The notes under the pieces are model-generated. The model did no database searches, had not been told where the DNA came from, and saw nothing but the letters and a program-made list of their open reading frames with translations. Made by a program: the position numbers and the translations under genes. Positions 1-59,850 of a stretch of DNA of 64,000 nt are shown piece by piece. Origin of the DNA: Hemiscyllium ocellatum. Its lineage: Eukaryota. The stretch lies in NCBI RefSeq assembly GCF_020745735.1, contig NC_083417.1, positions 71,982,001-72,046,000 of the forward strand, read 5' to 3'. Position 1 is the stretch's first letter. Each line of letters begins with the position of its first letter.

Positions 1-375
1 CCATGAACACCAACTAGCCACGAAACGACACAACCAGCTATCCTTAGTAGCCACACACGCAAATGACACGCAACATGAGTTCGACTGGAACAACACTACT
101 ATTATAGGACAAGCTAAACAGAGAACAGCCAGGGAATTCCTAGAGGCATGGCACTCACCCACAGATTCTATCAACAAACACATCGACCTGGACCCAATAT
201 AACCGGCCACTGCAACGGACAGCAACTGACAACCGAAAGCGACAGATTCAAACCACGATAAATGCCGGAGGAAACATCACAGAAGCGCTTCACCGGAGGC
301 TCCCAAGCACTGAGTATGTCACCTAGACAGGGGACGAAACGTCTGCAACACAAATTCCCAGCTCGGCGATCAGAA
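1..375 (+). mobile_element. Penelope-like retroelement 3' end (GIY-YIG endonuclease C-terminal remnant plus pseudo-LTR)
   Basis: Frame 2 from nt 2 reads HEHQLATKRHNQLSLVATHANDTQHEFDWNNTTIIGQAKQRTAREFLEAWHSPTDSINKHIDLDPI*, the R..E..h...N pattern of PLE GIY-YIG ends. It is followed by a minimal hammerhead-like motif at 307-346. Confidence 0.8.
307..346 (+). ncRNA. Minimal type I hammerhead ribozyme-like motif (probably inactive copy)
   Basis: GCA-CTGAGTA-T-GTCACC(TAGACA)GGGGAC-GAAAC-GTC-TGC. Stem I GCA/TGC, stem II, GAAA core and GUC triplet are present; the core reads CUGAGUA instead of CUGANGA. Confidence 0.6.
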
Positions 376-387
376 TCTCAACACTCT

Positions 388-600
388 ACTGGATATGTGA
401 CACTGCAGCATCTGTATCAGTACTGGGTCTGAGACAGTGCTGGGTCTGTATCAGTACTCGATCTGTGACAGTGCGGGGTCTGTATCAGTACTGGGTCTGA
501 GACAGTGCGGGGTCTGTATCAGTACTGCGTCTGAGACAGTGCTGGGTCTGTATCAGTACTGGATCTGTGACAGTGCGGGGTCTGTGCCAGTACTGGGTCT
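388..600. repeat. 34-bp minisatellite, about 6 copies, built from two diverged 17-mers
   Basis: TCTGTATCAG recurs at 411, 445, 479, 513 and 547, and as TCTGTGCCAG at 581. Unit TCTGTATCAGTACTGGG + TCTGAGACAGTGC(T/G)GGG. Confidence 0.9.
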
Positions 601-1039
601 GGTAGCCAGACAGATAATGTATGTCAACCAGACATGGAAAAAAAAACATATTATTAACGTATTATTGACATTGGAACTCTTGCTCAGTAATTTGAACAAG
701 TTGCCGAAAAGTAGCGAGAACGAAGGTAATATGCAGAAAATACACCGCAGTTTACCCGATATGTACGAACAAGTATTAGGTTTAACAGGCAATGCAATGT
801 TTTCAAACGTTCATAATTTTTAATTGTATCATCGCTGTTCCACTTAGAAATTGTCTTTGGATGTCGATGCGAGGAATATTTTTACGCTTTATTGAACAGA
901 TACAATTTCGCAACATGAAAGAACAATGACCGGTTGGCCGATTCGCTTCTTTTCTGCTGAAGAGAGCAATGGTGTTGTTTACATCCCAGACTGGCTGCAT
1001 AAATAACAGTGAATGTGGGACTAGTGTACGCGTTATGTA

Positions 1040-1175
1040 AGAGAGGGAGAGAAACTGTGTGCGTGTGTCTATCGCTATGCATGTGTGTATGAGAAGAGAG
1101 TAATGTGCGAAAGAGTAACAGAGATAGGTATATGAGTTAGAGCGTGGTGTGAGTATGAAATAGTTTAGAGATAGG
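1040..1175. repeat. Degenerate (GA)/(GT) low-complexity tract
   Basis: Interrupted GAGA and GTGT runs. Confidence 0.6.
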
Positions 1176-1888
1176 GGCAGTAACTCGAAGTGAGATTTGC
1201 GATGCACAGTGCACCTGAACTACTAAAAAACCGAAAATAAAATCTGTGGATGCTCATAATTAGAGATATCACTGTACGAGACGCAGGCAGTGAAAGATTA
1301 AGGTGCGTGTGGGTGAATGGTGGTTAGGCGAGGGAGAGAGGGAGAGCTGCTTGTTGGGCACAGCTCTAATTAAGGGATGTTTACTGGATAAGTGAGTGTG
1401 AGATCCCCATGCAATGAACAACGACTGAGAAATGATTGCGATAGCAACACGGTCTGAATGATGATACTGTAAACGGGTGCTGCATGTGTAAGAGACAGCA
1501 AGGAGAAATTGAAGTGTCAGGTGACAGTGGTGATGTGGTGGTGGCGGTTGGATTGGGGGGACAAGTCGCACGACACCGACTTACAGTCCAACAGGTTTAT
1601 GTGAAATCTTAAGCTCCCTGGTCAGGACTTCACCTGGTGTCCTGTGACACAGTGAGTGCGAGGTGGGTGTTAGCACTGAACGACACGTCAGCATTCAGTG
1701 ATAGGGTTCATTCTTTTCTTACAGTATGTACTGAATTGATAAGAAAGTAAAGGGTCAGCCAATGTCTCGCGCATCCATCCGTGCAGATACCGAATGTCAC
1801 TAATGAAGGATGATATATTTTGTTTCCTGCATTAAAAAAAGTCCTTTAATCTAGTTACAATGATGCAAGCAACAAATGATCCCCTTAC

Positions 1889-1979
1889 CTTTAAATGATC
1901 CACAGTAAGGCGGTCCCCAACACCACCATTCCGATCCCCAAAATCAAACGGAAGATGTTAATGGTGTGGAATCGGCCAA
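1889..1979 (-). CDS. Gene A transmembrane exon, (V)GRFHTINIFRLILGIGMVVLGTALLWII*
   Basis: Acceptor ctatccttcag, donor AAG/gtaagg. Hydrophobic segment with H-T-x-N-x-x-R-L, resembling the [YH]T-x-x-N-L-x-R motif of FcR-gamma-associating receptors (NKp46, GPVI, LILRA). Confidence 0.72.
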
Positions 1980-4900
1980 CTGAAGGATAGAGATTCAATG
2001 AGGAAATATAGAGAAACAATTAGAGACGGAAAGGAGACGCAGGATGTTAGTGTGTATGTCTTTAAAGGGAGTGAGAACAACCGAGAGGGAACTGAGTACA
2101 ACCAGTGTGTTAGACACAGGACTGTGCGCTTATGAGTTTACTTCAATACAACTGAGGGGCAGAATTAAAATGCTCAGAACCTTTCTCCATGAGTTCCGCG
2201 GAGTTTTCACTGAATATTGTGTGTATCAAGGAACCCCAAGAATAATCTACCCTCGGTCTTTTATTGGATCTGATCACTGACACTGCTAAACGGGAGCTAA
2301 AGCTAATTCTCATCCTCGCGTTAATTTCTAATGCAGTGCTCGATGGTAACAATACGCAATCAACGGAAAAGAGAAAGCTGGCATTTACATAGCGCCGTTC
2401 AGGCCCCTTTAAAGCCAAGGAACGACTCAAAGTGTGCTCGCCGCTGTAATAAATGTGACCATTTTGCATACGGTTTCCCAAAAGGCAATGTGAGAGTGAG
2501 CAGATCATTTGATTCTGTCGTGTGGATTGGTAGGATAAATATTCGCTTAGGACTGAGTTATTATCTTTAGGGATGAAACCGCGTGTCAGATAGGGGAACT
2601 GGGTATTATCTGCTAACAGCTGAAAACCTGTTGCTGGAAAAGCGCAGCAGGTCAAGCAGCATCCAAGGAGCAGGAGAATCGACGTTTCGGGCAGGAGCCC
2701 TTCTTCAGGATCTGCTAACCCCGAACCTGGCGCGGATTGAATGCAGTTTGTGGTCATTTTGAGCTGACGGTTAAGCAATACTTTAAAATATTGGCGTCAA
2801 GTTTGATTTCGGCTGGAGGCCCAAGTATGCGGGAATGGACCGGACCCTTGTAATTTTAATATTGAAGATTAGTGTAGACAGAAATCCCGCCGTGGGTTCC
2901 AGGATATAACAAAGATCGTGATTAAAGCAATCCTGAAAACCCATCGCCCTTACCATGGTTTGGAACCGTGTAGCTGATATTTGCCGGGACGCTGAGTGCG
3001 ATGTGAGAAATCTGACAGGTGTAGACTGACCCCCTCTCCGGAAGACTGAGCTCGCTGGAAACGGGAGATAAGGAGGACAAGAAAGTGGGAGGTGAATATA
3101 GAGAGAAAAGTAACTTTGATTTTTCCAATAAGACCAAGAGTGAATTGGAGAGAGAGAGAAAGAGAGAGAGAAAGACAGACTGAGAGCGAGAGCAAGAAAG
3201 TGTTTATCATCAGTTTTGTGGATGAAACCTCGCGTCAGACGAGGAAACTGGCCACAGACATGCTGGTTCCCGGACACAGTGCAGATGCAGTGCAGGCCGG
3301 TTTCTGTTTGTGGTAAATTTTGAACTGACGGCTTCGTAACACTTCAAATCTGTTTTTAACGTTGGCTGAAGTGCCAAGCATCCGGGAACGGAATGGACTC
3401 TTGTATTTTTAATATTGATGACAGATATTAGGTTCCTCTGTATATCAAAAAGGGAAAACCGGTGACCCTTACCGTGGTTCGGAATTTTGTCGCTGATGTT
3501 TGCCGGGACGCTGAGTGTGATGTGAGAAATCTGGCAGGTGTAGACTGACCCCTTCTCCGGAAGACTGAGCTCGCTGGAAACGTGAAATAAACCCTCTTCG
3601 TTCAGCATTTTCCTGATGTTGACGCCAGACGTGATTTCGGAGAGATTTTTATACCACACGAGTTCAAACTGCCCCGGGAAGAAGCCAGCTGTTGTGCAGA
3701 GGAGAGCGAGGAAGGGCGAGTACTGGCGGGTTATCTTCAGCGGGGTTGGCGGCACTGGAACACAATAACAATCAATAAATCAACATCGGAAGTTGTGTGT
3801 GAATTGGACAGTGGACTGAACAGCCTGTTAAAAGGCACAGGCATTTCTTGAATTTTGGAGGGAATTTTTTTTAATCAACCTATTAATGCGAACAACTAAA
3901 GTTTCAGTTCTGAAAGTTAGGATCGATGGACATTTGTTAAACCTCCCCTTCCTTTGCATTCGGATAAAACGTGGAGATAAATAGAGTGGACAAAACCATG
4001 TCAGAATGGGCAGCCACTGAATATGTTGGACGAGATAAATACTCTACACACACAGTTCAGAGTCTGCATTGGATTAACAGTGGTCAAATCAGACAAAGTC
4101 AGAGTCCATACTAAAAAAAAGCGGTTCGATCAGACACCCTCAGTCTGTTGTCCATTGAACAATCACTGGTTCAACCGGACACAGGCAATCCAGAATCTAT
4201 TAAATACTTACTTTTTCCACGAGACATTCTCAATCCATAGTTTGTATTGAATTATAATTGGTCCCATCAAAGTCTCAAACCCAAGTCCAAGTCCAATGAG
4301 ATGCTCCGCAGACTTTCTCAGGGACACTATCCATGGCACTGCACACAAGGCCGTTGAGAACAAACAGGGGAAGACACAAGACTGGTTGGAAGCGAGCTCA
4401 AGTAATCTCACCGCTGTCAAGGAGGCAAAACGTGTTGCGCCACTTCACCCAGGCAACACTGTCTCCACTAAGGACAACAAGGCGCAAGTGCAATGTGCAC
4501 CCGTAATGTTGTAAAGGAAGGAGTTTCAGGATTTCGATCCAGCGACACTATAATAGAATGGTGTTATATTTACAAGTCAGGGTGGTGACAGGCTTGGAAG
4601 GGAAGTTGTATGTGGTCGTGTTGCCATCTATCTGCTGCTGTGGGTTTTGAAGGTGCTGTCGACGAATATTGGGCGAATTCCTATACTGCGTCTTGGAGAT
4701 GGCACACACTGATGTGACCGGACATGTTCATATGTAAAACGGCATCCAGGATTGTCACAGAGCATCGGTCATGCAGGGAATGGTGATACATGTGGTGCCA
4801 ACGAAATGGGCTGCATTGCCTGAATGCATTATCAAGCGTGTTGGGTGTTGTTGCAGCTACATTTAATCCGGCAAATGGGACGTCTTCGATCATATTGTCG

Positions 4901-7900
4901 ACGTGTGCTTCATAAATGGTGGATAGGATTTGGGGAGTCAGGAGGTGGATCACACATTGTTGCTTCCTGGCCTTCCATCTGCTCTTGTAGATATTGTATT
5001 GACATGGTTAGTCCAGTTCAGGGCCTCGGCAACCCCCAGGATGATAATGTTTTGTAAAATAAATGAAAAGGCATTTTTCTCGGAAATATTTCTCTGGAGT
5101 TGTAAACAGTCTTCATCTATAAACGATAGCTAACTAGGTCATCTATTAACAATGTCATCGCTAAATTCCAAATAGAAGTTCAACAATTAGAGATTTTCAC
5201 AAAATGCATCCCTTGACTGTTAAAGTTATATGCGAAACGAATTTGCACTTTTTTTTGCCTTTACTGAGAATTAAAAAAACCCTATCTCCTTCAGTTGATT
5301 ATTTCTAATGAACTTGTCCTTGAAACTATTTGGTCTATCTTCTTCACAATCATTAGTTCCCGACTGGCACTCAAACACACTCATAGAGATGTACATCATG
5401 GGAAAAGACCCTTCGGTCCAACTCGTACATGCCGATCAGATATCCTAACCTAATCTAGTCCCATTTACCAGCAATTAGCCCATATCCCTTCAAACCCTTC
5501 CTATTCAAGTACACATCCAGATGATTTTTAAATACTTCCTCTGGGAGCTCATTCCATACACGTACCACTCTCTGCGTGAAAACGTTGCCCCGTAGGTCCC
5601 ATGAAAATGTTTCCCCCTCACGTTGTGTACTCTCCCACCCCAGAGAACAGACCTTGTCTATTTATCCTATCCATGCATCTTATGATTTTATACATCTCGA
5701 TAAGGTCACCCATCAGCCTCCAACACTCCGGGGAAAACAACACTATTCAGCCACTCCCTGACGACATCCTTGTAAAGCTTTTCTGAACTACGTCAAGTAT
5801 CCCGGCATCATTCTGAGAGGAGGGAGACCAGAACTGCACACAATATTTCAAAAGTGACCTTACCAATGTCCTGTACAGCCACAATATAACCTCCCAACTC
5901 TTATAGTCAATGCACTGACCAATGAAGGAAAACATATCAACAGCTTGTTCACTATCCTGTCTCCTTGCGACTCCACTCCAAGAGCTCTCCATGACCACCC
6001 TCTGTTTTCTACCTTTGAGCCAGTTCTGTATCCAAATGGCTAATTCTCCTGCATTCCATGTGATCTAAACTTGCAAACCAGTCTACCATGAGGAACCTTG
6101 TCTAACCCAGTTCATGTAGATCCCTTGGGAAATATGTTGGTTTCCCAGTGGAGCACACATTCTTCACACAATGTGAATTTGAACAACATGCGATCTTTGC
6201 ATGTACTTCTCAGGATTGCATTTATTCATTTCCTGATTGATCATTTGCTTCGTGCCTCCAAACCTCATTTTCAATTGACAAAATCCTGTTGCAATCCCAG
6301 GCCAACATCTGGTATGGATGATGCCACTACCCATTTCAAAGGCAGAGTTGCTTTACAAAACAGGCCAGTTACATTTGAAGCTGGTGCACAGACTTGAGCA
6401 AGTGCCTCGAGGACCTATTTAGTATTCAGAAAAAAAAATCACTTTCATATATATTTCCATACTGAGACTTAATGTAGGGAGATTGGTTGCATCAACATAA
6501 CGAGGTAAAGTGTTTAGTAAACTTTATCCACTTCTTAAAATCAGGATTTAAGATGAGACTCAAACTATGAGGAATGTATATATTTATCAACAGTTGCAAA
6601 CAAAATTGGGGATTAACCAAAATAAATATATCAGTGAATTTAATCTCGAAGTAAACGTAAACTTCTCCACAAAATCATACTTGGAAGCAGCGCTAAGTAC
6701 ATTTCTAATTTCAAGTTTACTGTAGAAGCAATCCAAATAATGCTGTCTGCTTCTCAGGGAAATTTTGAGTGAGCACTTCTTAGTATTTAAGATTCCAATC
6801 CGACAGTGTGAGGAAGCACGTCATTTCTGAGATAGCAGAATACTCCATGCTTCTCAGTTAAAGTTAAGTGAGCAGTTGTAAATATTTAAGAAAAAGCATG
6901 ACATTTCTGAGACAGCATTTAATAATTCGTTTTACCTTAGTTTGCATTGGAATGTTTTCCTAATGCCTGTTCCTCTTCCTCAGGATAATTATTTGCTCTC
7001 GTTTTGCATTACTCACACCGTGCTGTATCTGTATCCGTTTATGATCACTTGCACCTATTTGGTAATCGATTTTGAAAACCTGACATTTATCTCTTTAACA
7101 GAAAAACACATCTTTCCACTTTGAACTCCATGACAAATCTAATGCATTTCATTTCCGGTAGCTATCAAAATCAAGTGGAGCATTATTTATGATACGTTAT
7201 CTGATTATAAATATACGATATAATACAAGATTAAGTACATTACACCGCCTGGCTAGCTTTGATTGACCGCGGACAGCAAGTCTGGTATCCACCAGGACAA
7301 TTTCGGTTTAAGTCTCATTGAACTGAAAAAAAGACCAGCCTTCCTTTCGGCACCAAACTGAAAGCAGACCCTTGCTGCTCTTGTTATCTATTATCGATGT
7401 ATACCTGCCTAATTTAACGTTGTTCATTCCTCCTCAGTGACACTCACCGTGTACAATAAGCTTAGTCCCATTCCCATTGGAAGTTTTCCTGCCGAAGACG
7501 CTGATGCGACAAAAATAGATTCCGGAGTCCCGGAAGCTCACATTCAGCAGATGGAACACAGAAAATATTTGCTTGAACGGTAATATTATTTTCCTTTTGT
7601 CTGCTGTTGGATCCAAAGGTTTGATCTCTCCATCTTTCCGCCAGGACACGTTAACCGATATTTTGCGATCGAAAAGCGGGGTGGAGCAATACATTGACAC
7701 ATTTGTACCTTCCACTGCAGTCAGGTACGGGGGGGATTGAATCACGGGCAAAGGGGTTTCGCCAGTACCTGCCAGAAATATATACAAGCGTTAGTTGCTC
7801 CTGTTTCATGAACCGAAAAATGAAAAATGGTAAAATAATGGTTTAGAAACTCAGCGAAACAAAATCCAATAATTAATCATGAAAACGAAGCTGCCAGTTT

Positions 7901-8016
7901 TGAATTCTCAGTATTTCCATTCATATTCCTATCCGCTAGATGAGTGTAAATATTTATAGACCTGTATAAATTACTCGCAGGACTGAGAGATAGCAGAGCA
8001 CATGAAACACGGGCAT
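1891..8016 (-). CDS. Gene A: NKp30/NCR3-like VJ-C1 IgSF receptor, activating type (L-V-C1-TM with Arg, no tail), about 248 aa
   Basis: Exons 7962-8016 (leader MPVFHVLCYLSVLRVIYT), 7448-7768 (V), 3473-3754 (C1) and 1889-1979 (TM, stop TAA at 1891-1893). All joins are GT-AG and phase 1, and the frame is open throughout. Confidence 0.75.
2617..2710 (-). mobile_element. Short Penelope-derived repeat with hammerhead-like core
   Basis: Minus strand CTGAAGA-AGGGC(TCCT)GCCC-GAAACGTCG at 2680-2708, followed by ATTCTCCTGCTCCTTGGATGCTGC; same family as 19984-20088. Confidence 0.65.
2954..3063 (-). pseudogene. Truncated 3' third of a diverged paralogous C1 exon
   Basis: Reads SSELSLPERGSVYTCQISHIALSVPANISYTVPNHG with intact donor G/gtaagg. 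The downstream intron (about 2760-2953) is a clearly diverged homolog of about 3320-3472. Confidence 0.8.
3147..3192. repeat. (GA)n microsatellite in the C1-TM intron (also about 24541-24580 and 45935-45975)
   Basis: GGAGAGAGAGAGAAAGAGAGAGAG. Confidence 0.8.
3473..3754 (-). CDS. Gene A C1-set Ig domain exon (282 nt)
   Basis: C1 signatures LLCTTAGFFPGQFELVWYKN, NEEGLFHVSSEL and YTCQISH. Acceptor ttgtgttccag, donor G/gtaagg. Confidence 0.92.
4400..5070. mobile_element. Decayed LINE fragments specific to the gene A V-C intron
   Basis: GTAATGTTGTAAAGGAAGGAGTTTCAGGATTTCGATCCAGCGAC matches the repeat at about 26140-26190 and 47535-47580. The 4290-5380 stretch is otherwise absent from units 2 and 3. 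Confidence 0.5.
5385..6090 (-). mobile_element. CR1-type LINE fragment (RT C-terminus and 3' tail)
   Basis: Minus frame LWLYRTLVRSLLKYCVQFWSP matches the CR1 RT C-terminal LVRPHLEYCVQFWSP motif. Related fragments at about 26300-27240 and 47720-48660. Confidence 0.8.
7448..7768 (-). CDS. Gene A V-set exon with germline-encoded J-like G strand (321 nt)
   Basis: C..W..DSGIYFC framework. The end, CRISVFGRKTSNGNGTKLIV, parallels NKp30 CRVEVLGLGVGTGNGTRLVV. Acceptor tttctggcag, donor G/gtgagt. Confidence 0.93.
7962..8016 (-). CDS. Gene A leader (signal peptide) exon
   Basis: ATG at 8016-8014, 18 mostly hydrophobic codons plus a phase-1 donor CAG/gtctat. Same 55-nt exon in all three copies. Confidence 0.75.
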
Positions 8017-16685: not shown

Positions 16686-17660
16686 TCATGGAATCCAGGG
16701 GTTCCCGCTTCCCTTGCACATCTCGACCCCTGCATACTCCGCCGGTTCGTTCCTTTGTTTTCGTCTTGACATTTTCTCGAAGGTGGTGAGATTCAAAGAC
16801 GCATTCATCAGTTCACCAACTGTGCGGTGCTTAGCCTGCGTGAGAACGAATGAATTATGAGGACGTCTTCTGACTCTGTTTAATAAAATCATTCAGGTTG
16901 TCCGTGTACATTACTGAGATCGGATTTATATTAGAGTGATCCCGGTTGGAATTGTTAATTTTCAACACAGTACCTGCGCATCGACAACTCTTCCTTCATT
17001 AACGGTCTCCCGGTTTTTCTTGGGTCGCTGTAAACGCAATAGTATTTTCTTGGGTACTGTAAACGCAATAGTATTACATGTTGGGGGTGATCAGTTGCTG
17101 CATATCAGGGCTGTGCGATCACCGCTGCCAAGCCCAGCAGCTCTTATTCCGACCCGTTCAGAGAAATAATCAATCAAATTCCTCACTCAAAGTATGTCCT
17201 GCACCCTTGTCCTCAAAGTCATCCTTTATAAACGGGGGTCCAGCAAATCAGTGAAAACAAAACACTGATTTTTGCAAAGAGGTTTCAGCCAGAACAGCCA
17301 AGTGTATGATCCATCTTGATTTCCTCCTGTGCTCCACAGTATTACAAATGCCCGTCTTCAGGCAATCCAATACACTTCATTTGCAATCATTAAACAGTCG
17401 GAGAGACTGGAGATTACAAATGCACTGTGACAGCAGACTTCTGCTCCAGAATTTGCCGCAACGCTAGCCAAGCTGTTCTGTATAACCAGAACCCAGGCAT
17501 CTGTGCAAAACTGCAGAAAAGAATCGGGGTGTGTCCACATATGCGAATTGTATGATAAAGCAAATACTGTCCCATCAATCTACGACCTGTTATCTGCTTT
17601 TTCCACTCAGCACCTGATTTCATTCCAGACTTTACAGGACTCTTTGCAATTCTCCAGGAG
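16686..17660 (-). pseudogene. Orphan diverged cytoplasmic-tail cassette, unit 1 (A' exon partly deleted, B' exon 16686-16835 open)
   Basis: B' = AKHRTVGELMNASLNLTTFEKMSRRKQRNEPAEYAGVEMCKGSGNPWIP*, homologous to exon 21547-21693. GATTTCATTCCAGAC is shared between about 17615-17630 and 23005-23020. No L/V/C/TM exon found upstream. Confidence 0.75.
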
Positions 17661-21546: not shown

Positions 21547-21693
21547 TCATGGAATCCAGGCGTTTCCGCTTCCCTTTTTTATTTTGACCTCTGCATACTC
21601 CGCCTCCTTTTTATTTGGTTTTCTTGCCGTTTTCTCGGAAGCGGAAAGATTCAAAGACGCGTAGGTCAGTTCGCCAGCTGTCCGGTGCTTTGT
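21547..21693 (-). CDS. Gene B terminal exon with canonical ITIM (LTYASL) and distal AEYAEV motif
   Basis: TKHRTAGELTYASLNLSASEKTARKPNKKEAEYAEVKIKKGSGNAWIP*; acceptor ttttattacag. Confidence 0.85.
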   Translation of the reverse strand, partial: TKHRTAGELTYASLNLSASEKTARKPNKKEAEYAEVKIKKGSGNAWIP

Positions 21694-24600
21694 CTGTAAT
21701 AAAACAATGAAATATAAGTAGTTTCTGCTACTCACTTTAATAAAATTATTCAGGCTGTCGGTGTACATTACCAAGCTGAAAATCACACAACACCAGGTTG
21801 TAGTCCAACAAGTTTAATTGGAAGCAAGAACCTTTCGGAGCACCTCTCCTTCATCCGATGTTTGCAGAGTGCACAATTGTAAGACTCAGAATTTATAGTA
21901 AAAGTTTACAGTGTGATGTAACTGAAACACCAATCTGTGCAGACACGAATTGTTAAGGTTAACCCGAGAATGTAACTTTAAAACAAAGTTTTGTGATTTG
22001 CATATGAAAGAAGCGAAACTAACATTGTCATTCTAAAAGATGAGAGACTTAACAAACAATGTAAGGTATTTTGCAATGTGTAATTTCAGTTACATCACAC
22101 TGTAAACTTTTACTATAAATTCTGTGTCTTAAAATTGTGTACTCCAGAACCACTTGAGGAAGGAGCGGCGCTCCGAAAGCTTTTGCTTCCAATTAAACCT
22201 GCTGGACTACAACCTGGTGTTGTGCGATTTTTAACTTTGTACACACCAGTCCAACATCGGCATCTCCAAATCATACATGACTAAGGTCAGACGTGTGTTA
22301 AAGCGGTCCCCATTGGAAAACCGATGGTTAATTTTCATGACAGTACCTGCGCATACACAAAGCTCTCTTTCTCCGTTAGTAGTTTTGCAGGTTTCCTCTC
22401 TCCGCTGAAGTGGAGAGCAGCATAAATCGGACTCACTGCCTCTCTGTCCCGATTGACCTGAGGAAGGTTTTGCAGAAAGGTTAGCCAGCAAGTTTAAAAA
22501 AATGTAATCACAAATCGAGCTGTGCCTCTGCTCCTGACTGAAGAGCAGGCCAACTGATCCTAACAAAACGCAAACATTTAAAATGTCTTCGAGAGTTGCG
22601 GGCTTGTCTGGACTCGACGTCATTGTCCCAATGGATCACTGTCTCGTGTTCATATCAGAGCGATGCACTGGGGACACCGTGAACTCGATATGCGTGCCGT
22701 CGAAGGACACCGTCTGAGATTCCTGGAGAATGGATAGAAATTACCCGTATGTAGACAACATCCCACTCACAGTTTCGTTCTCGTTGTCATAAGTAGAAAC
22801 TGACCTGTTCCTCAAATTGGCTGTTCATGTCCTCAGCAGTCGCGTTGCCTGTCAGAGAACCGAATGGCATTACACACATGATCATTTTCACAATGTATCA
22901 CAAGCCCGCAAGAAATTAAGCCCCATTGAAGCAAAGTGAGCAGGCTCGCCGAACGCTAACATTCTGCTATATATCTGGATGAGATGAGCTGCACATTATG
23001 CGCACTGCACTTGAAGATTTCATTCCAGACTGCCCGTCCCCTTTCTCTCCTACTGCAGCAGTGACATGGAACAAGAGATGAAAGCCCAGTACAGAATCAG
23101 GAAAAAAATCAAGTCTCACCAGTTGTTTTGTCTAATTTGCACCCCTTGAAGACAATTCCCAGAACTAAAATCATAATCCCGCCTGCTGCACAACCAAAGA
23201 CTAAGGCGTAGTAGAATGTACGGTCTTGGTTACCTATAGGGGACAGAGAAGGTGTAATGTTAGCATTTTTAAAAGCAGATGATACAACATATTCGCCAAT
23301 CCAGGTAACAGACTGCACTCACATTAAAACCGTCTCTGCCACATTCCTGCAGCTTCTCACCGAACGCGAGGCTCCGTTGTCCCTTTATCGACCAACTAAT
23401 TGAACCACAAAGCGCCTATCCATTTCGAAAACACCAGCATGTGTTCAGAATAATGACCGTATTTGATTTAGTGAATATACAGCATTGTTTATAATCCCTC
23501 CGCGAATTAGCGCGTATTTACCAGGTGGAAAGATCTCTACCTCGTTCCACACGTCATTCAAACAGGCGAAAGAATTGACCCTGTGCCCATCATTTACGAA
23601 CCATGCTTCCTATATTCTTTTCCCAATCATTTAGAAAATAACAAGCACTGGTCCCAGCCCTGATCCATGCGGGATACCACTGGTCACAAGACTCGAGTCC
23701 GAAAAGCAAATTTCTACCACCACCCTGTCTCCTCCCGTCAAACCAATTTTGTATCCAATTGTCTAGCACTCCCTGAATCCTACGTGATCTAATTTTACTA
23801 ACAAGTCTGCCAAGCGGAATCTTGCCGAAGGAACATGTACCAAAAGACTGGATGAATGCATCAGATTTTACTATTGGCTCTTGGGATGTGGGTATCGGGG
23901 GCTGAGGCAGCATTTGTTGTCCATTTCTTTGTAGCAGAGTCGCTGTTCTAACATATGCATTGTAGCATCTATTATGGACACTGTTTTTGAAAGGCCAATG
24001 TGATAGTGATCAGACCATCTGATTCTGTGATGTGGATTTCGGGGGATAAGTATTCACGCAGGGCTTACTTGCTATTCTGCAAAACGGTGCGCCGGATCTT
24101 TTGCTCCTACGTGTAGGGACAATCAGATTTTCCTCCTCCTCGGATGCTGCCCGACCTGCTGTGCATTTCCAGCACCACTTCAATCTTCACTCTAATCTCC
24201 AGCATCTACAGTACCCACTTTAGCCCCAGAAAGACCGCACCTTCAACTGAGCAATACTGCCTCAGCACTGCGAGGCTCTGCCAAACCATTGTGAGTGGGA
24301 TCGGAAGAGGAATTGATCCTACGGCCTTCAAAAACAGATAACAAAAAAAAAATAAGCGATCAGACCAACTGAGGTGCGTACCAAGGCAGTAACTACGGAG
24401 TGCCCAGGAAGTGAATGGAGAGCGAGTGGCGTCTGATGTTGGACGCATTACGGTGATGGAGATAAGGAGGACAATAAAGTGGGAGGTGAACATAGAGAGA
24501 AAAGTAACTTTGATTTTTCCAATAAGACCAAGAGTGAATTGGAGAGAGAGAGAAAGAGGGAGAGAAAGACAAACTGAGATGGAGAGCAAGAAAGTGTTTA

Positions 24601-27600
24601 TCATCAGTCTTGTGGATGAAACCTCGCGTCAGACGAGGAAACTGGCCATAGACATGCTGGTTCCCGGACACAGTGCAGATGCAGTGCAGGCCGGTTTCTG
24701 TTTGCGGTAAATTTTGAACTGACGGCTTTGTAACACTTCAAATCTGTTTTTAACGTTGGCTGAAGTGCCAAGCATCCGGGAACGGATTGGACCCTTGTAT
24801 TTTTAATATTGATGACAGATGTTAGGTTCCTCTGTATATCAAAAACTGAAAACCGGTGACCCTTACCGTGATTCGGAATTTTGTCGCTGATGTTTGCCGG
24901 GACGCTGCGTGTGATGTGAGAAATCTGGCAGGTGTAGACTGACCCCTTCTCCGGAAGACTGAGCTCGCTGGAAACGTGAAATAAACCCTCTTCGTTCACG
25001 ATTTTCCTGATGTTGATGCCAGACGTGATTTCGGAGAGATTTTTATACCACACGAGTTCAAACTGCCCCGGGAAGAAGCCAGCAGTTGTGCAGAGGAGAG
25101 CGAGGAAGGGCGAGTACTGGCGGGTTATCTTCAGCGGGGTTGGCGGCACTGGAACACAATAACAATCAACAAATCAACATCGGAAGTTGTGTGTGGGTTG
25201 GACAGCAGACAGAACAGAACAGCCTGTCAAAAGGCATAGATTTTTTTGAATTTTGGAGGGAATTTTTTTTAATCACCCTAATAATGTTAACAAATAATGT
25301 TCCCATTCTGAAACTTAAAATCGATGTATGCTTGTTAAACCGCTCCTTCTTTTTCATTCAGATAGAAAGTGGAGATAAATGGAGTGGACAAAACCATGCA
25401 CAAAACAGACAAAATGTTGGACGAGGCACGCACTCTGCACACGCAGCTCTGAATCTATATTGAATAAACAGTGGTCACAGTTAGTCAGAGTCCATACTAA
25501 ATAATCGCCAGGTGCACCAGACACCCTCAGTTTATTGTCCATTGAACAATCACTGGTTCAATTGGATACCAGAAATTCAGAGTCTACTCAATGGATCCAC
25601 CAGATATTCTCAATCCACAGTTTGCATTTAATTATAATTGGTCCCATCAAAAGCCTCAATCTCAAGTCCAGGACTGGTCGTGTCTTTGTATTTAGGTTGC
25701 AATGAAACGATGATTGAAGATGAATAAAAACGGGGCGTTCAGTTTCTATCACTAGCGTGACACTATCGCAAATACAAGCTTAATCCAATTTACTTTTCAC
25801 TCCCTTTCTTTTTTCTTTCTCGTTTCGATTATTGAGCTTGGAATTTAACCCTCTACCCGTCTGTCCGAAGGTACGTTTGCATTTGAGATCAATCCAACCT
25901 CCACCCGCATCTGTTAAAACTGCAATAAAAAAATTAGCATCCTAAATTCAAGAATTCCTTTGTTTGCTCGGCCCCGCCCCTCAAAAGATGACAAATAGCT
26001 AACCCTTTTCAAGGAAAGGTATGCATGCAATGTTGGTGTTTCTATCGACTTCATATTCTATTTCCTATTTCCAATTGCCCTTGCGAAGATGGTAGTAAGC
26101 TGTCTTCTTGAACCACGGCAACCCACGGAGGTATGCCTGCATCCGTAATGTTGCAAAGAAAGGAGTTTCAGAATGTTGACCCAGCGACACTATTATGGGA
26201 ATGATGATACATTTCAAAGTCGGGATGGTGAAAGGTTTGGAAGGTCATATTGCCACGTATCTGCTGCTGTGGGCTTTGTAGGTGCTGTCGACGAATATAT
26301 AGTGAATTTCGACATTGCGTATCCCTCTAAACTTTCCCTGATTACAAACCCACCCAGATGCTTTTAAATCTTGTACTTGTACAAGCATCCACGAGCATTC
26401 TAGCCTTGTACTAGCCTTCTCACAGCTTATTCCATGCACTCACCACACTCCTCGTGGAAAGTTGCCCCTTAGGTCCATTTTAAATTATTCCCCTCTCACC
26501 CTAAAACTTTCCACTGTGGTTCTTTACTCCCCCATTCCAGGGAAAAGACCTTGTCTATTTAATTTATCACGCCCGTCATGATTTTAGAAATCTCTATCAG
26601 GTCAGCCGCTGACCCTCCAGCGAAACCAACTCCAGCCTATTCAGCCTCTCCCGATAAATCAAATCGTTCAAGCCTGGCTACATCCCTGTAAAGCTTTTCT
26701 GAACCCTTTCAAGTTTCAAAACATCCTTCCGATTGGAAGGAGATCAGAATTGCATACCGTATTCCGAATGTGGCCTCACCAATCAACCTGCACTCCAAGG
26801 TCTCTGTTCAGCAACATTTACCAGGACGTTCCCATTATGTGTATAAGTTCTACCCTGGTTTGCTGTTCCAAAATGCAGTACCTCTCATTTGTCTAATTAA
26901 ACTCCATCTGCCACTCTTCTGCCCGGTGGCCCATCTGATCAAGTTCTTGTTGTTCTCTGAGGTAACCTTCTTCGCTGTCCACGGCACCTGCAATTTTGTT
27001 ATCATCTACTAACTTACTTACTTTACCTCCTATGTTCACATCCAAGTCATTTATGAAAATGACGAAAAGCAGTGAACCCAGCACCCCGATCCTTGTGGCA
27101 CACCACTGGTCACAGGCCTCCAGTCTGAAAGGCGACTCTCCATGACCACCATCTGTTTTCTACCTTTCAGGCAGTTCTGTATCCAAATGCCTAATTCTCC
27201 CTGTATTCCATGTGATCTAAACTTGCAAGCCAGTCTACCATGAGGAACCTTGTCCAACCCAGTTCATGTAGATCCCTTGGGAAATATGTTGGTTTCCTAG
27301 TGGTGCACACATTCTTCACACAATGTGAATTTGAACAACATGCGATCTTTGCATGTACTTCCCAGGATTGCATTTAGTCATTTCCTCATTGATCATTTGC
27401 TTCAGGCCTCCAAACCTCATTTTCAATTGACAAAATCCTGTTGCAATCCCAGACCAACATCTGGTATGGATGATGCCACTACCCATTTCAAAGGCAGAGT
27501 TGCTTTACAAAACAGGCCAGTTACATTTGAAGCTGGTGCACAGACTTGAGCAAGTGCCTCGAGGACCTATTTAGTATTCAGAAAAAAAAATCACTTTCAT

Positions 27601-29168
27601 ATATATTTCCATACAGTGACTTCATGTAGGGAGATTGGTTGCATCAACATAACGAGGTAAAGTTTTTAGTAAACTTTATCCACTTCTTAAAATCAGGATT
27701 TAAGATGAAACTCAAACTATGAGGAATGTATATATTTATCAACAGTTGCAAACAAAATTGGGGATTAACCAAAATAAATATATCAGTGAATTTAATCTCG
27801 AAGTAAACGTAAACTTCTCCACAAAATCATACTTGGAAGCAGCGCTAAGTACATTTCTAATTTCAAGTTTACTGTAGAAGCAATCCAAATAATGCTGTCT
27901 GCTTCTCAGGGAAATTTTGAGTGAGCACTTCTTAGTATTTAAGATTCCAATCCGACAGTGTGAGGATGCGCGTCATTTCTGAGATAGCAGAATACTCCAT
28001 GCTTCTCAGTTAAAGTTAAGTGAGCAGTTGTAAATATTTAAGAAAAAACATGACATTTCTGAGACAGCATTTAATAATTCGTTTTACCTTAGTTTGCATT
28101 GGAATGTTTTCCTAATGCCTGTTCCTCTTCCTCAGGATAATTATTTGCTCTCGTTTTGCATTACTCACACTGTGCTGTATCTGTATCCGTTTATGATCAC
28201 TTGCACCTATTTGGTAATCGATTTTGAAAACCTGACATTTATCTCTTTAACAGAAAAACACATCTTTCCACTTTGAACTCCATGACAAATCTAATGCATT
28301 TCATTTCCGGTAGCTATCAAAATCAAGTGGAGCATTATTTATGATACATTATCTGATTATAAATATACGATATAATACAAGATTAAGTACATTACACCGC
28401 CTGGCTAGCTTTGATTGACCGCGGACAGCAAGTCTGGTATCCACCAGGACAATTTCGGTCTAAGTCTCATTGAACTGAAAAAAAGACAAGCCTTCCTTTC
28501 GGCACCAAACTGAAAGCAGACCCTTGCTGCTCTTGTTATCTATTATCGATGTATACCTGCCTAATTTAACGCTGTTCATTCCTCCTCAGTGACACTCACC
28601 GTGTACGATAAGCTTAGTCCCATTCCCATTGGAAGTTTTCCTGCCGAAGACGCTGATGCGACAAAAATAGATTCCGGAGTCCCGGAAGCTCACATTCAGC
28701 AGATGAAACACAGAAAATACTTGCTTGAACGGTAACATTATTTTCCTTTCGTCTGCTGTTGGATCCAAAGGTTTGATCTCTCCATCTTTCCGCCAGGACA
28801 CGTTAACTGATATTTTGCGATCGAAAAGCGGGGTGGAGCAATACATTGACACATTTGTACCTTCCACTGCAGTCAGGTACGGGGGGGATTGAATCACGGG
28901 CAAAGGGGTTTCGCCAGTACCTGCCAGAAATATATACAAGCGTTAGTTGCTCCTGTTTCATGAACCGAAAAATGAAAAATGGTAAAATAATGGTTTAGAA
29001 ACTCAGCGAAACAAAATCCAATAATTAATCATGAAAACGAAGCTGCCAGTTTTGAATTCTCAGTATTTCCATTCATATTCCTATCCGCTAGATGAGTGTA
29101 AATATTTACAGACCTGTATAAATTACTCCCAGGACTGAGAGATAGCAGAGCACATGAAACACAGGCAT
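21547..29168 (-). CDS. Gene B: NKp30/NCR3-like VJ-C1 IgSF receptor, inhibitory type with four-tyrosine tail, about 357 aa
   Basis: Exons 29114-29168 (L), 28600-28920 (V), 24867-25148 (C1), 23120-23233 (TM), 22805-22848, 22347-22457 and 21547-21693. Phases 1,1,1,1,0,0 join into 1074 nt with no internal stop. A possible extra 42-nt exon lies at 23011-23052. Confidence 0.82.
21779..22231. mobile_element. Fold-back (inverted) Penelope-like pseudo-LTR pair in the last intron (also about 43182-43633; truncated copy about 63491-63851)
   Basis: Arms 21779-21927 and 22084-22231 are reverse complements (about 150 bp, roughly 85-90% identical). The right arm has TTGAGGAAGGAGCGGCGCTCCGAAAGC, a hammerhead-like core. 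Confidence 0.8.
22347..22457 (-). CDS. Gene B cytoplasmic exon A (PIYAAL ... FVYAQ)
   Basis: 111 nt, phase 0-0, VNRDREAVSPIYAALHFSGERKPAKLLTEKESFVYAQ. Acceptor ccttcctcag, donor CAG/gtactg. Confidence 0.75.
22805..22848 (-). CDS. Gene B 44-nt cytoplasmic exon (G)NATAEDMNSQFEEQ
   Basis: Acceptor ttctctgacag, donor CAG/gtcagt. Supplies the phase 1-to-0 change the model needs. Confidence 0.7.
23120..23233 (-). CDS. Gene B transmembrane exon (uncharged)
   Basis: GNQDRTFYYALVFGCAAGGIMILVLGIVFKGCKLDKTT. Acceptor ctgtcccctatag, donor G/gtgaga. Confidence 0.85.
23570..24215. mobile_element. CR1 and short interspersed repeat fragments in the C1-TM intron (also about 44980-45620)
   Basis: GRLVSKIRSRRIQGVLDNWIQNW CR1 RT motif on minus; GGATGCTGCCCGACCTGCTGTGCATTTCCAGCA repeat at about 24140. 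Confidence 0.7.
24867..25148 (-). CDS. Gene B C1-set exon
   Basis: Same splice sites and signatures as 3473-3754. Confidence 0.92.
28600..28920 (-). CDS. Gene B VJ-type V exon
   Basis: 6 nt and 3 aa differences from the gene A V exon (manual count). Confidence 0.93.
29114..29168 (-). CDS. Gene B leader exon MPVFHVLCYLSVLGVIYT
   Basis: ATG at 29168-29166; donor CAG/gtctgt. Confidence 0.78.
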
Positions 29169-37760: not shown

Positions 37761-38860
37761 TTACCCTTTGTATTCAACTAATACAACTTCCCCGAGTAAC
37801 TGTAATATCATTGAACATTGTTGGAGTTCATGGATTCCAGGGGTTCCCGCTTCCCTTGCACATCTCGACCCCTGCATACTCCTCTGTTTTCGTCTTGACA
37901 TTTTCTCGAAGGTGGTGAGATTCAAAGACGCATTCATCAGTTCACCAACTGTGCGGTGCTTAGCCTGCGTGAGAACGAATGAATTATGAGGACGTCTTCT
38001 GACTCTGTTTAATAAAATCATTCAGGTTGTCCGTGTACATTATCGGATTTATATTAGAGTGATCCCGGTTGGAATTGTTAATTTTCAACACAGTACCTGC
38101 GCATCGACAACTCTTCCTTCATTAACGGTCTCCCAGTTTTTCTTGTGTCGCTGAAGTTGAGAACCTCATAAATCGGACTCACTGTTTCTCTGACGCGTTT
38201 GATCTGAGGAGAAGTTTGCGGAAACTTTCGCCACATGTGAATTTAGAAAGAAAGGTACTGTAAACGCAATAGTATTACATGTTGGGGGTGACCAGTTGCT
38301 GCATATCAGGGCTGTGCGATCACCGGTGCCAAGCCCAGCAGGTCTTATTCCGACCCGTTCACAGAAATAATCATTCAAGTTCCTCACTCAGAGTATGTCC
38401 TGCACTCTTGTCCTCAAAGTCATCCTTAATAAACGGGGGTCCAGCAAATCAGTGAAAACAAAATACTTACATATTTGCAAAGAGGTTTCAGCCAGAACAG
38501 CCAAGTGTATGATTCATCTTGATTTCCTCCTGTGCTCCACAGTATTACAAATGCCCGTCTTCAGGCAATCCAATACGCTTCATTTGCAATCATTAAACAG
38601 TCGGAGAGACTGGAGATTACAAATGCACTGTGACAGCAGACTTCTGCTCCAGAATTTGCCGCAACCCTAGCCAAGCTGTTCTGTATACCCCAACCCAGGC
38701 ATCTGTGCAAAACTGCAGAAAAGAATCGGGGTGTGTCCAGATATGCGAATAGTATGATAAAGCAAATACTGTCCCATCAATCTACGACCTGTTATCTGCT
38801 TTTTCCACTCAGCACCTGATTTCATTCCAGACTTCACAGGACTCTTTGCAATTCTCCAGG
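37761..38860 (-). pseudogene. Orphan tail cassette, unit 2 (A' 38097-38203; B' from 37964 with a 13-bp frameshifting deletion)
   Basis: A' = IKRVRETVSPIYEVLNFSD..., 107 nt versus 111 nt. B' lacks CCGCCGGTTCGTT and reads ...RRKQRSMQGSRC... Confidence 0.75.
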
Positions 38861-49000: not shown

Positions 49001-50496
49001 GTTCATAAATATTTCCATACTGCAACTTCATGTAGATAGAATGGTTGCATCAACATAACGAGTTAAAGAGTTTAGTAAACTTTATCCACTTCTTAAAATC
49101 AGGATTTAAGATGAGACTCAAACTATGAGGAATATATATATTTATCAACAGTTGGAAACAAAATTGGGGATTAACCAAAATAAATATATACCTGTGAATT
49201 TAATCTCGAAGTAAACGTAAACTTCTCCTCAAAATCATACTTGGAAGCAGCGTTAAGTACGTTTCTAGTTTCAAGTTTATTATTGAAGCAATCCAAATAA
49301 TACGCTCTGCTTCTCAGGGAAATTCTGAGTGAACAGTTCTAAGTATTTAAGATTTCAATCCGACAGTGTGAGGAAGCACGTCATTTCTGAGACAGCATTT
49401 CATAATTCGTTCTACCTTAGTTTGCATTGGAATGTTTTCCTAATACCTGTTCCTCTTCTGGAGGATAATTATTTGCTCTCATTTTGCATTACTCACACAG
49501 TGCTGTAGCTGTATCCGTTCATGATAACTTGCACCTATTTGATAATCGATTTTGAAAACCAGACATTTATCTCTTGAAAAGAAAAACACATCTTTCCACG
49601 TTAAACTCCAAGACAAATCTAATGCATTTCATTTCCGATAGCTATCAAAATCAAGTGGAGCACTATTTAGGATACATTATCTGATTATAAATAGTCGGTA
49701 TAAAACAAGATTAAATACATTATGGCCTGGCTAGCTTTGATTGACCGCGGACGGCAGGTCTGATGTACACCAGCACAAGTTCGGTCTAAGTCTCCTTGAA
49801 CTGAAAAAAAAGACAAGCCTTCCTTTCGTCGCCAAACTGAATGCAGACTCCCTGCTGCTCTTGTTATCTATTATCGATGTAGACCTGCCTAATTTAACGT
49901 TGTTCATTACTCGTCAGTGACACTCACCGTGTACGATAAGCTTAGTCCCATTCCCATTGGAAGTCTTCCTACCGAAGACGCTGATGCGACAATAATAGAT
50001 TCCGGAGTCCCGGAAGCTCACATTCAGCAGATGGAACACAGAAAATGCTTTCTTGAACGGTAATATTATTTTCCTTTTGTCTGCTGTTGGATCCAAAGGT
50101 TTGATCTCTCCATCTTTCCGCCAGGACATGCCAACCGATAGTTTGGGATAGAAAAGCGGGATGGAGCAATACATTGACACGTTTGTACCTTCCACTGCAG
50201 TCAGGCACGCGGGGTATTGAGTCACAGACAAAGGGGTTTCGCCAGTACCTGCCAGAAATATATACAAGCGTTAGTTGCTCCTGTTTCATGAACCGAAAAA
50301 TGAAAAGTGGTCAAATAATGGTTTAGAAACTCAGCAAAACAAAATCCAATAATTCATCATGAAAACGAAGCGGCCAGTTTTGAGTTCTCAGTATTTCCAT
50401 TCATAATCCGATCCGCTAGATGAATGTAAATATTTATAGACCTGCATAAATTACTCCTAGGACTGAGAGACAGCAGAGCACATGAAACACAGGCAT
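42950..50496 (-). CDS. Gene C: VJ-C1 IgSF receptor, inhibitory type, diverged V domain
   Basis: Exons 50442-50496, 49928-50248, 46262-46543, 44522-44635, 44207-44250, 43749-43859 and 42950-43096. Same lengths and phases as gene B; frame open. Confidence 0.82.
44522..44635 (-). CDS. Gene C transmembrane exon
   Basis: Same translation as gene B TM. Confidence 0.85.
46262..46543 (-). CDS. Gene C C1-set exon
   Basis: LFCTTAGFFPGQFELVWYKNFS...YTCQISH. Confidence 0.92.
49928..50248 (-). CDS. Gene C VJ-type V exon
   Basis: SVTQYPACLTAVEGTNVSMYCSIPLFYPKLSVGMSW...YYCRISVFGRKTSNGNGTKLIVH. Confidence 0.93.
50442..50496 (-). CDS. Gene C leader exon MPVFHVLCCLSVLGVIYA
   Basis: ATG at 50496-50494; phase-1 donor. 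Confidence 0.75.
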
Positions 50497-58797: not shown

Positions 58798-59850
58798 TCA
58801 TGGATTCCAGGGGTTCCCGCTTCCCTTGCACATCTCGACCCCTGCATACTCCGCCGGTTCGTTCCTCTGTTTTCGTCTTGACATTTTCTCGAAGGTGGTG
58901 AGATTCAAAGACGCATTCATCAGTTCACCAACTGTGCGGTGCTTAGCCTGCGTGAGAACGAATGAATTATGAGGACGTCTTCTGACTCTGTTTAATAAAA
59001 TCATTCAGGTTGTCCGTGTACATTACTGAGATCGGATTTATATTAGAGTGATCCCGGTTGGAATTGTTAATTTTCAACACAGTACCTGCGCATCGACAAC
59101 TCTTCCTTCATTAACGGTCTCCCGGTTTTTCTTGGGTCGCTGAAGTTGAGAACCTCATAAATCGGACTCACTGTTTCTCTGACGCATTTGATCTGAGGAG
59201 AAGTTTGCGGAAACTTTCGCCACATGTGAATTTAGAAAGAAAGGTACTGTAAACGCAATAGTATTACATGTTGGGGGTGATCAGTTGCTGCATATCAGGG
59301 CTGTGCGATCACCGGTGCCAAGCCCAGCAGCTCTTATTCCGACCCGTTCACAGAAATAATCATTCAAGTTCCTCACCCAAAGTATGTCCTGCACTCTTGT
59401 CCTCAAAGTCATCCTTAATAAACGGGGGTCCAGCAAATCAGTGAAAACAAAACACTTACATATTTGCAAAGAGGTATCAGCCAGAACAGCCAAGTGTATG
59501 ATCCATCTTGATTTCCTCCTGTGCTCCACAGTATTACAAATGCCCGTCTCCAGGCAATCCAATACACTTCATTTGCAATCATTAAACAGTCGGAGAGACT
59601 GGAGATTACAAATGCACTGTGACAGCAGACTTCTGCTCCAGAATTTGCCGCAACGCTAGCCAAGCTGTTCTGTATAACCACAACCCAGGCATCTGTGCAA
59701 AACTGCAGAAAAGAATCGGGGTGTGTCCACATATGCGAATAGTATGATAAAGCAAATACTGTCCCATCAATCTACGACCTGTTATCTGCTTTTTCCACTC
59801 AGCACCTGATTTCATTCCAGACTTTACAGGACTCTTTGCAATTCTCCAGG
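58798..59850 (-). pseudogene. Orphan tail cassette, unit 3 (A' 59086-59192; B' 58798-58947 open)
   Basis: B' is 150 nt, in frame, with LMNASL and AEYAGV. Confidence 0.75.

Follow-up and report, generated by a model that had tools for sequence, protein, structure and literature searches.

An activating-type membrane-anchor exon carried by a predicted hybrid gene in a V-C1 receptor array of the shark Hemiscyllium ocellatum

The 64,000-nt stretch of Hemiscyllium ocellatum DNA analysed here (the window) contains a tandem array of V(J)-C1 receptor genes, one of which, gene A, is by its sequence a hybrid that joins an inhibitory-type leader-V-C1 part to the transmembrane (TM) exon of an old activating gene. 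This 91-base exon is a genuine and ancient membrane-anchor exon of the putative activating type. The genes themselves are already known as unnamed or misnamed RefSeq models, the splice from 3473 to 1979 included. What is new with respect to the initial annotation of this DNA is the hybrid nature of gene A, the recurrent replacement of ectodomains, and the loss of 17 + 1 nt from the TM exon.

The TM exon and the elements associated with its annotation are the following:

1979..1889, minus strand: TM exon of the activating type, 91 nt, entered in phase 1, unique in the window
1889..1979, minus strand: coding content of the TM exon, (V)GRFHTINIFRLILGIGMVVLGTALLWII, with the stop codon TAA at 1893..1891
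1888-1887, minus strand: GT donor of the TM exon, AAG/GTAAGG, 2 nt past the stop codon
1845..1850, minus strand: ATTAAA hexamer resembling a poly(A) signal, about 41 nt past the stop, a consensus match only
4226..4211, minus strand: ATG mini-exon of 16 nt, MSRGK + A, the start of the NCBI model in place of leader and V

The acceptor AG of the exon (1981-1980, minus strand) is preceded by a pyrimidine-rich tract. The C1 donor at 3473 is in phase 1 (CAC G/GT), and its G combines with TT across the 3473-to-1979 splice to encode Val; the joined exons read ...IPNH-V-GRFHTINIFRLILGIGMVVLGTALLWII, followed by the TAA at 1893..1891. With its stop, the exon product is VGRFHTINIFRLILGIGMVVLGTALLWII, and the TM segment considered in the pairing test is INIFRLILGIGMVVLGTALLWII. 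The Arg of the cassette lies about 5 residues into the membrane and in gene A is part of an Asn-x-x-Arg near the outer TM face, which reads T-I-N-I-F-R both here and in Chiloscyllium plagiosum. The anchor has 18 apolar residues and is essentially tail-less, so that gene A combines a basic TM residue with a short tail free of tyrosine motifs. It had been claimed earlier that this 91-nt exon has good splice sites, is in phase with the C1 donor and is unrelated to the TM of genes B and C. These points are borne out: the AG and GT sites can be read, phase 1 matches on both sides, and the exon is single in the window, the B/C type of TM exon being that at 23233..23120. The layout of a stop followed by a donor implies a 3'-UTR exon further downstream, which was not found within the window. 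The ATTAAA at 1845..1850 is a possible alternative 3' end in case the donor at 1888-1887 stays unused.

A protein search with the C1 frame identified an NCBI protein model of H. ocellatum (P0001, 128 aa) whose residues 100-128 are identical to the TM exon peptide. P0001 consists of MSRGKM, the gene A C1 domain and the exact TM peptide, is named 'rano class II histocompatibility antigen, A beta chain-like', and is encoded on the 85-Mb chromosome as well as on a 39.9-kb contig of the assembly. The 3473-to-1979 splice proposed in the initial annotation is present in this model, and was therefore already part of the public RefSeq annotation of the species. The 16-nt ATG start exon of the model could have arisen as an ab initio extension. 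In the databases searched, no H. ocellatum protein model was found that combines V, C1 and this TM. The probability that 1979..1889 is a chance open frame flanked by chance splice-like sites is vanishingly small, its small size being the only feature that would speak for such an origin; this reading was rejected because of the identical peptide in the NCBI model and because of the orthologous exons of two other sharks, Chiloscyllium and Heptranchias, which share R, T, N, R, two G, T and the stop-plus-donor layout.

The window is composed of three tandem units of about 21.4 kb each, with V exons starting at 7434, 28586 and 49914. The ectodomain exons of gene A and the exons of its inhibitory neighbour, gene B, are located as follows:

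8016..7962, minus strand: leader exon of gene A, MPVFHVLCYLSVLRVIYT
7768..7448, minus strand: V exon of gene A, 321 nt, VJ-type, with the J-like motif G-N-G-T-K-L-I-V
3754..3473, minus strand: C1-set exon of gene A, phase 1/1, Pfam C1-set
21550..29168, minus strand: gene B, inhibitory, with exons matching P0002 and P0003
about 29168, minus strand: leader of gene B
28600-28920, minus strand: V exon of gene B
24867-25148, minus strand: C1 exon of gene B
23233..23120, minus strand: uncharged TM exon of gene B, LVFGCAAGGIMILVLGIVF, of the same kind in gene C
22802-22852, 22347-22460 and 21550-21708, minus strand: cytoplasmic exons of gene B, with the motifs LTYASL and AEYAEV

Genes B and C each have their own TM exon followed by three cytoplasmic exons bearing LTYASL and AEYAEV. 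All exons of gene B match P0002, and the gene shows the features of an inhibitory member, namely an uncharged TM and an ITIM-type tail with LTYASL (LxYxxL) and AEYAEV. Genes A and B are linked and have similar ectodomains, as paired receptors do. Their V exons are separated by 6 substitutions in 321 nt, with 3 aa changed (K57E, I61M, I67V), exactly the count given in the initial annotation, and their C1 exons by 6 in 282 nt, with 4 aa changed, which makes 7 differences in 201 ectodomain residues (96.5% identity). The three V differences all fall in the D-strand region; from the sequence, the loops corresponding to CDR1 and CDR3 appear to be identical in A and B. The V exon of unit C (49928-50248, minus strand) is 14-16 aa apart from those of A and B, with the differences concentrated in the first (A) strand and in the BC loop after the first Cys; dN/dS between unit C and A/B is about 0.9-1.0, on changes too few to test.

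Two further observations were made on the array. Each unit carries a diverged second copy of the last cytoplasmic exons (16689-16853, 37831-38218 and 58801-59210, minus strand), in which the tyrosine of LTYASL is replaced (ELMNASL). At the right end of the window, a cytoplasmic exon (63971-64000, minus strand; TEKESFVYAQ) starts a fourth unit.

The origin of gene A can be read at the point where its likeness to the other units stops. Between 12000 and 3072, gene A shares 96-98% identity with units B and C; at the boundary itself, identity is 96-97% down to 3072 and falls to about 44%, the level of unrelated DNA, beyond this point. Two features mark the boundary:

about 3063..3072, minus strand: fusion junction, where the homology of A to B/C ends and C1a starts in mid-exon
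2954..3071, minus strand: C1a remnant, the 3' half of the C1 exon of the old activating gene, ...ERGSVYTCQISHIALSVPANISYTVPNH, with a GT donor at 2953-2952

The remnant carries the signature ERGSVYTCQ...ISYTVPNH and has its nearest relative in the activating gene of C. plagiosum, whose C1 it matches at 85% (P0004 residues 138-177). Within the window, 2746-3071 matches 3306-3590, and the remnant differs from the gene A C1 by 12%. The microhomology TTAT(C/T)TC is common to the B-type intron (CTCCTTATCTCC) and the C1 exon (GGTTTATTTCA) where they meet. These features are accounted for by a single deletion, with microhomology at its ends, running from the intron 400 nt past the C1 of an inhibitory unit to the middle of the C1 of the old activating gene. 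This deletion took the 3' exons of the last inhibitory unit of the array together with intergenic DNA, as well as the leader, the V and half of the C1 of the old activating gene. The fusion is recent and specific to the Hemiscyllium lineage, since A and B differ by 2-3.5% and the remnant differs from the A C1 by 12%. Simple tandem duplication was rejected as the origin of this left edge: an event of this kind would leave the 5' half of C1a next to the inhibitory intron, and it is the 3' half that is observed. The half exon retains an intact donor and has, by chance, a pyrimidine tract and an acceptor-like CAG (3057-3055); spliced between C1 and the TM exon, its 101 nt would break the frame. 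A (CT)n/(GA)n microsatellite lies at about 3140-3200, in the intron directly 5' of the junction.

The TM cassette was also found in other sharks. In C. plagiosum, LOC122558644 (P0004) has a V, a C1 ending in ISYTVPNH, then AGRFHTINIFRLILGIVVMVLGTAFIVDHLK and one more exon; its TM cassette is GRFHTINIFRLILGIVVMVLGTAFIVDHLK, with the boundary ...AFIVDHLK. In the sevengill shark Heptranchias perlo, P0164 and P0165 combine a V-C1 of orthologous type with DRFPTLNFCRFLLGLMVILLGTTIIVDHLKSVPF, after which the reading frame stops. The Heptranchias DNA was read as locus L002 (CM068652.1), from which two exons were aligned with the window exon. The orthologous cassettes have tails of at most 8 residues past the TM. 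The N-x-x-R form, which reads T-L-N-F-C-R in Heptranchias and T-I-N-C-V-R (YTINCVR) in a Leucoraja relative, was found in hemiscylliids, in Heptranchias and in this one Leucoraja relative; the Asn at -3 from the Arg is missing in paralogous clades.

An exhaustive profile-free search returned 939 relatives, those that are named belonging to sharks, rays, skates and one chimaera; the NCBI names are mostly SIRP-alpha-like, tapasin-related-like and NCR3LG1-like. In the majority the TM is uncharged and the tail bears LxYAxL and TEYAx[ILV]. A smaller group is short-tailed and has a TM composed of R, 16 apolar residues and [D/E]-H; its members are Heterodontus P0012, Carcharodon P0016, Scyliorhinus P0020, C. 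punctatum P0027 and Heptranchias P0058. In Heptranchias P0037, a Gln stands at the place of the Arg of related cassettes. The acidic motif at the inner end takes the forms IVDH, IVEH, IFDH and IMDH among orthologues and paralogues, and the TM exon of the C. punctatum paralogue is likewise entered in phase 1. Judged from these models, the Arg/D-H cassette is common to galeomorph and squalomorph sharks and to several ectodomain clades. The V(J)-C1 family spans the cartilaginous fishes, and the Arg cassette itself was found in sharks. When the C. plagiosum TM segment was used as a query for further relatives, the protein search gave only the self-match within the length range searched. A PDB search with a shark TM segment gave no match.

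Three other arrangements were noted during this survey. A second activating TM exon (CRFLLGLAVILMGNTLIVDHLKSDSFYG*; L002 5068-5157, minus strand) occurs in Heptranchias in inverted orientation, at a distance of 5 kb on the upstream side of the activating gene; its old stop is now TAT, and its frame ends within the donor sequence GTAAG. In the DNA that separates the two Heptranchias activating TM exons, neither a V nor a C1 exon was detected. The NCBI model P0005 (C. plagiosum LOC122558646) contains the inhibitory TM exon twice running (GNQDRTFSYALVFGCAAGGIMILVLGIV...) and has an unrelated C-terminal part; the doubling reflects either a real tandem duplication of the exon or an error in the model. 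Lastly, a multi-C1 protein of the lungfish Protopterus annectens (P0072, 'signal-regulatory protein beta-1-like') has a short tail and a TM of R, 16 apolar residues and H-E, with an Arg spacing equal to that of the shark cassette.

Comparison with Heptranchias revealed that the 3' end of the window exon has been remodelled. The Heptranchias exon ends in GTC GAC CAT TTG AAA TCA GTC CCC TTT TAA AG/GTAAGA, and this stop 2 nt before the donor indicates that the stop-then-donor layout is ancestral. With respect to the Heptranchias exons, the window exon lacks 17 nt (GAAATCAGTCCCCTTTT; the KSVPF codons), and one further nt is missing between GCC (1911-1909) and GTG (1903-1901). Because 17 + 1 nt make 18 nt, the ancestral TAA is back in frame. 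IVDHL has been turned into LLWII, and the gene A protein ends in ...GTALLWII, with neither the D-H motif nor a tail. A trace of the former boundary is still visible in the DNA:

1903..1889, minus strand: relic of the cytoplasmic-boundary motif, V-D-H-L-K, readable only in the other frame

The acidic inner TM end is accordingly absent from the gene A copy, lost through the 1-nt deletion, and [D/E]-H is kept in eight other cassette copies from six species. The proposed order of events is that the 17-nt loss, in the hemiscylliid lineage, would have shifted the old stop out of frame, and that a later 1-nt loss in Hemiscyllium would have put it in frame again. The 17-nt loss alone gives ...DHLK and read-through into the next exon, which is the exact state of the C. 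plagiosum protein, where the deletion is deduced from the protein sequence only. The annotated C. plagiosum protein has a 31-aa hydrophobic tail from this next exon, with no recognisable motif or match. The counterpart of the tail exon was not found in window positions 1-1888.

In a maximum-likelihood tree of the V-C1 ectodomains, the Heptranchias activating form grouped with two Heptranchias inhibitory forms (100/100), and all hemiscylliid forms grouped together (100/100), the C. plagiosum activating form being sister within this group. The predicted activating ectodomains are thus clustered with the inhibitory ones of their own lineage, and the TM cassettes are orthologous across species, a combination which indicates that ectodomain replacement recurs. 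The near-identity of A and B results from a recent segmental duplication (flanks 96-98% identical) and the fusing deletion. The initial annotation had inferred nearly the same ligand surface for A and B, as a putative counter-measure to pathogen decoy ligands. The near-identity is the latest case of repeated ectodomain re-matching and is no evidence that this pair is under selection for one ligand surface. The example of SIRP-alpha and SIRP-beta shows that nearly identical V domains may differ in their ligand. The accompanying claim that A and B form an activating/inhibitory pair stands in part. An Arg-bearing TM does follow an ectodomain 96.5% identical to that of an ITIM-bearing neighbour, and the same pairing exists in Chiloscyllium and Heptranchias; on the other side are the remodelled exon end and the absence of an annotated V-C1-TM protein.

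If expressed, the gene A product would be a type I membrane protein without a tail, and both its transport to the surface and its signalling would depend on a contact between the TM Arg and the TM Asp of a dimeric ITAM adaptor. The candidate type is FcR-gamma/CD3-zeta by the position of the Arg, and the receptor would then give an activating signal for a ligand that gene B reads as inhibitory. The need of a lone Arg in the outer third of a tail-less TM for an adaptor follows from general knowledge of receptors and adaptors and from PMC2413239 and PMC6557307. FcR-gamma is the partner of the N-x-x-R TMs in NKp46, GPVI and LILRA, and the initial annotation agrees on this point with these sources (PMC2413239, PMC6557307).

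On balance, gene A probably still yields a tail-less activating-type membrane receptor. There is a smaller but appreciable chance that it is a decaying relic of a birth-and-death receptor cluster, with no working V-C1-TM protein in H. ocellatum: the fusion deletion and the two indels of the TM exon would be steps of gene death, and the exons would seem intact only because these events are recent. Several features fit decay. The D-H motif found throughout the family and the tail are gone; the leader and V are absent from the RefSeq model; the half-exon remnant in the intron could disturb splicing; and the C. plagiosum protein, after its 17-nt deletion, reads into the motif-free hydrophobic tail described above. 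Leader codon 14 (7976-7974, minus strand) is CGA (Arg) in gene A only, versus GGA (Gly) in B, C and Chiloscyllium, which places an Arg in the hydrophobic part of the signal peptide. The dN/dS values among A, B and C (0.3-1.2) are compatible with neutrality, although they rest on very few changes and are uninformative on constraint. Against decay stand the open frames and consensus splice sites of all four gene A exons, the retention of the Arg, the Asn and the 18 apolar TM residues, and an upstream region and promoter 98% identical to those of the intact neighbour B. Moreover, the 1-nt deletion brings back exactly the ancestral stop, as expected if a short tail-less end was selected.

It is rather improbable that the protein is made and its Arg recruits no ITAM adaptor, the residue serving instead in retention or quality control, in pairing with another V-C1 chain, or in a signal-less decoy against B. 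Such a role would be compatible with the conserved [D/E]-H at the inner boundary, which has no assigned role, with an Asn at -3 in only some family members, and with a 2014 survey of shark data in which FcR-gamma was not found (PMC4016189). The literature searched contained nothing relevant on shark FcR-gamma, CD3-zeta or DAP12. Against this, one basic residue in the outer TM third combined with a very short tail is the standard signature of adaptor dependence (PMC2413239 and general knowledge), and the protein has no Cys close to the membrane through which a disulphide-linked dimer could form.

Paired activating and inhibitory receptors are well studied in mammals and barely described in cartilaginous fishes, and this locus shows a shark V(J)-C1 family with both predicted signalling types. 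Its Arg-bearing TM cassette would predate the split of the two great shark lineages, the ectodomains having been re-matched within each. What the window adds is a fusion junction still legible in the DNA and a possibly very old origin of the N-x-x-R cassette. The clean deletion junction and the half-exon remnant offer a concrete route by which an activating receptor may gain the current ectodomain of its inhibitory neighbour. The D-H boundary motif, lost in Hemiscyllium and kept in its sister genus, provides a natural test of its role. The gene A cassette is also a defined bait for the shark adaptor, and bears on when FcR-gamma-type coupling arose.

Four known systems can be compared with the locus. 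Human NKp46, GPVI and Fc-alpha-R reportedly have an Arg-to-acidic spacing of 16 residues, as in the shark cassette. The N-x-x-R subtype of anchor known as 'TM1' occurs in the tetrapod LRC, in Xenopus FCRL-like and in SLAM-like receptors, couples to FcR-gamma (PMC2413239, PMC6557307, PMC4536121) and is reported only down to amphibians and birds. TM1 and the shark cassette both have an Asn three residues before the Arg near the outer face, a short tail and several ectodomain lineages, and both TM1 and the shark orthologues have an acidic residue at the inner TM end (D-H), lost in gene A. Before the TM, the TM1 consensus D-Y-T corresponds to R-F-H-T in gene A, R-F-P-T in Heptranchias and I-Y-T in the skate relative, with only the Thr shared. 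The shared positions are few and the Asn is variable across the shark family; homology is no more than a candidate explanation of the likeness. We found no description of N-x-x-R TMs below amphibians, nor of the shark V-C1 family or its Arg/D-H cassette, in the literature searched. A tentative proposal, which we hold to be unlikely rather than likely, is that the tetrapod TM1 exon and the shark cassette ([H/Y]-T-x-N-x-x-R, 16 apolar residues, [D/E]-H, minimal tail) descend from one and the same exon. If true, this exon for adaptor coupling would already have existed in the common ancestor of jawed vertebrates and would since have been moved among different Ig ectodomains and re-fitted to them repeatedly, the window keeping the DNA footprint of one such re-fitting.

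UrIg and UrIg2 are non-rearranging elasmobranch VJ-C1 genes, UrIg2 with nine to eleven C domains; their main sites of expression are liver and gill, and no activating/inhibitory pairing is described for them (PMC12227049). They resemble the shark genes in having a non-rearranging VJ exon followed by a C1-set domain. Identity of gene A with UrIg/UrIg2 was rejected, as gene A has a single C1 (Pfam) and not several C domains. Multi-C1 proteins do occur among the family matches (P0008, 1105 aa, NCBI 'titin-like'). PRARP are chicken VJ-C1 genes; a search for a shark SIRP-like or paired V-C1 family, or for PRARP, returned nothing relevant in the literature searched.

SIRP is similar in its VJ-like V followed by a C1-set domain, in the paired tyrosine motifs (LTYASL ... 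AEYAEV) of its inhibitory members, and in an activating partner with a near-identical ectodomain and a basic TM residue, as in A/B. In SIRP-beta this residue is a Lys and the adaptor is DAP12. Many of the cartilaginous-fish relatives are named 'tyrosine-protein phosphatase non-receptor type substrate 1-like' by NCBI. SIRP is V-C1-C1, however, and the shark genes have a single C1 between V and TM (Pfam, exon map). A PDB sequence search matched SIRP-alpha (E = 2e-8), MHC class II beta (1e-10) and UrIg2 (9e-10), and Ig also, and the atlas neighbours comprised Ig light chain-like, tapasin-related and SIRP-beta-like proteins. The match to SIRP does not stand out from those to other V-C1 proteins, and there is one C1, not two; orthology to SIRP would be a tentative reading at most.

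The paired receptors KIR and LILR/PIR are alike in their tandem clusters, their ITIM-tailed inhibitory members and their near-identical ectodomains, and their activating members have, as gene A does, a TM Arg and almost no tail. They differ in that the shark ectodomain is a VJ-type V plus one C1-set domain, not C2/I-set, that the host is a cartilaginous fish, and that the gene A copy, known here from sequence alone, has a remodelled TM end. Macaque activating KIR consist of a KIR3D ectodomain and the TM of KIR2DL4, formed, like gene A, by recombination onto an Arg-TM exon (PMC8102735). By analogy, the locus would resemble the classical paired receptors in its working and SIRP in its architecture.
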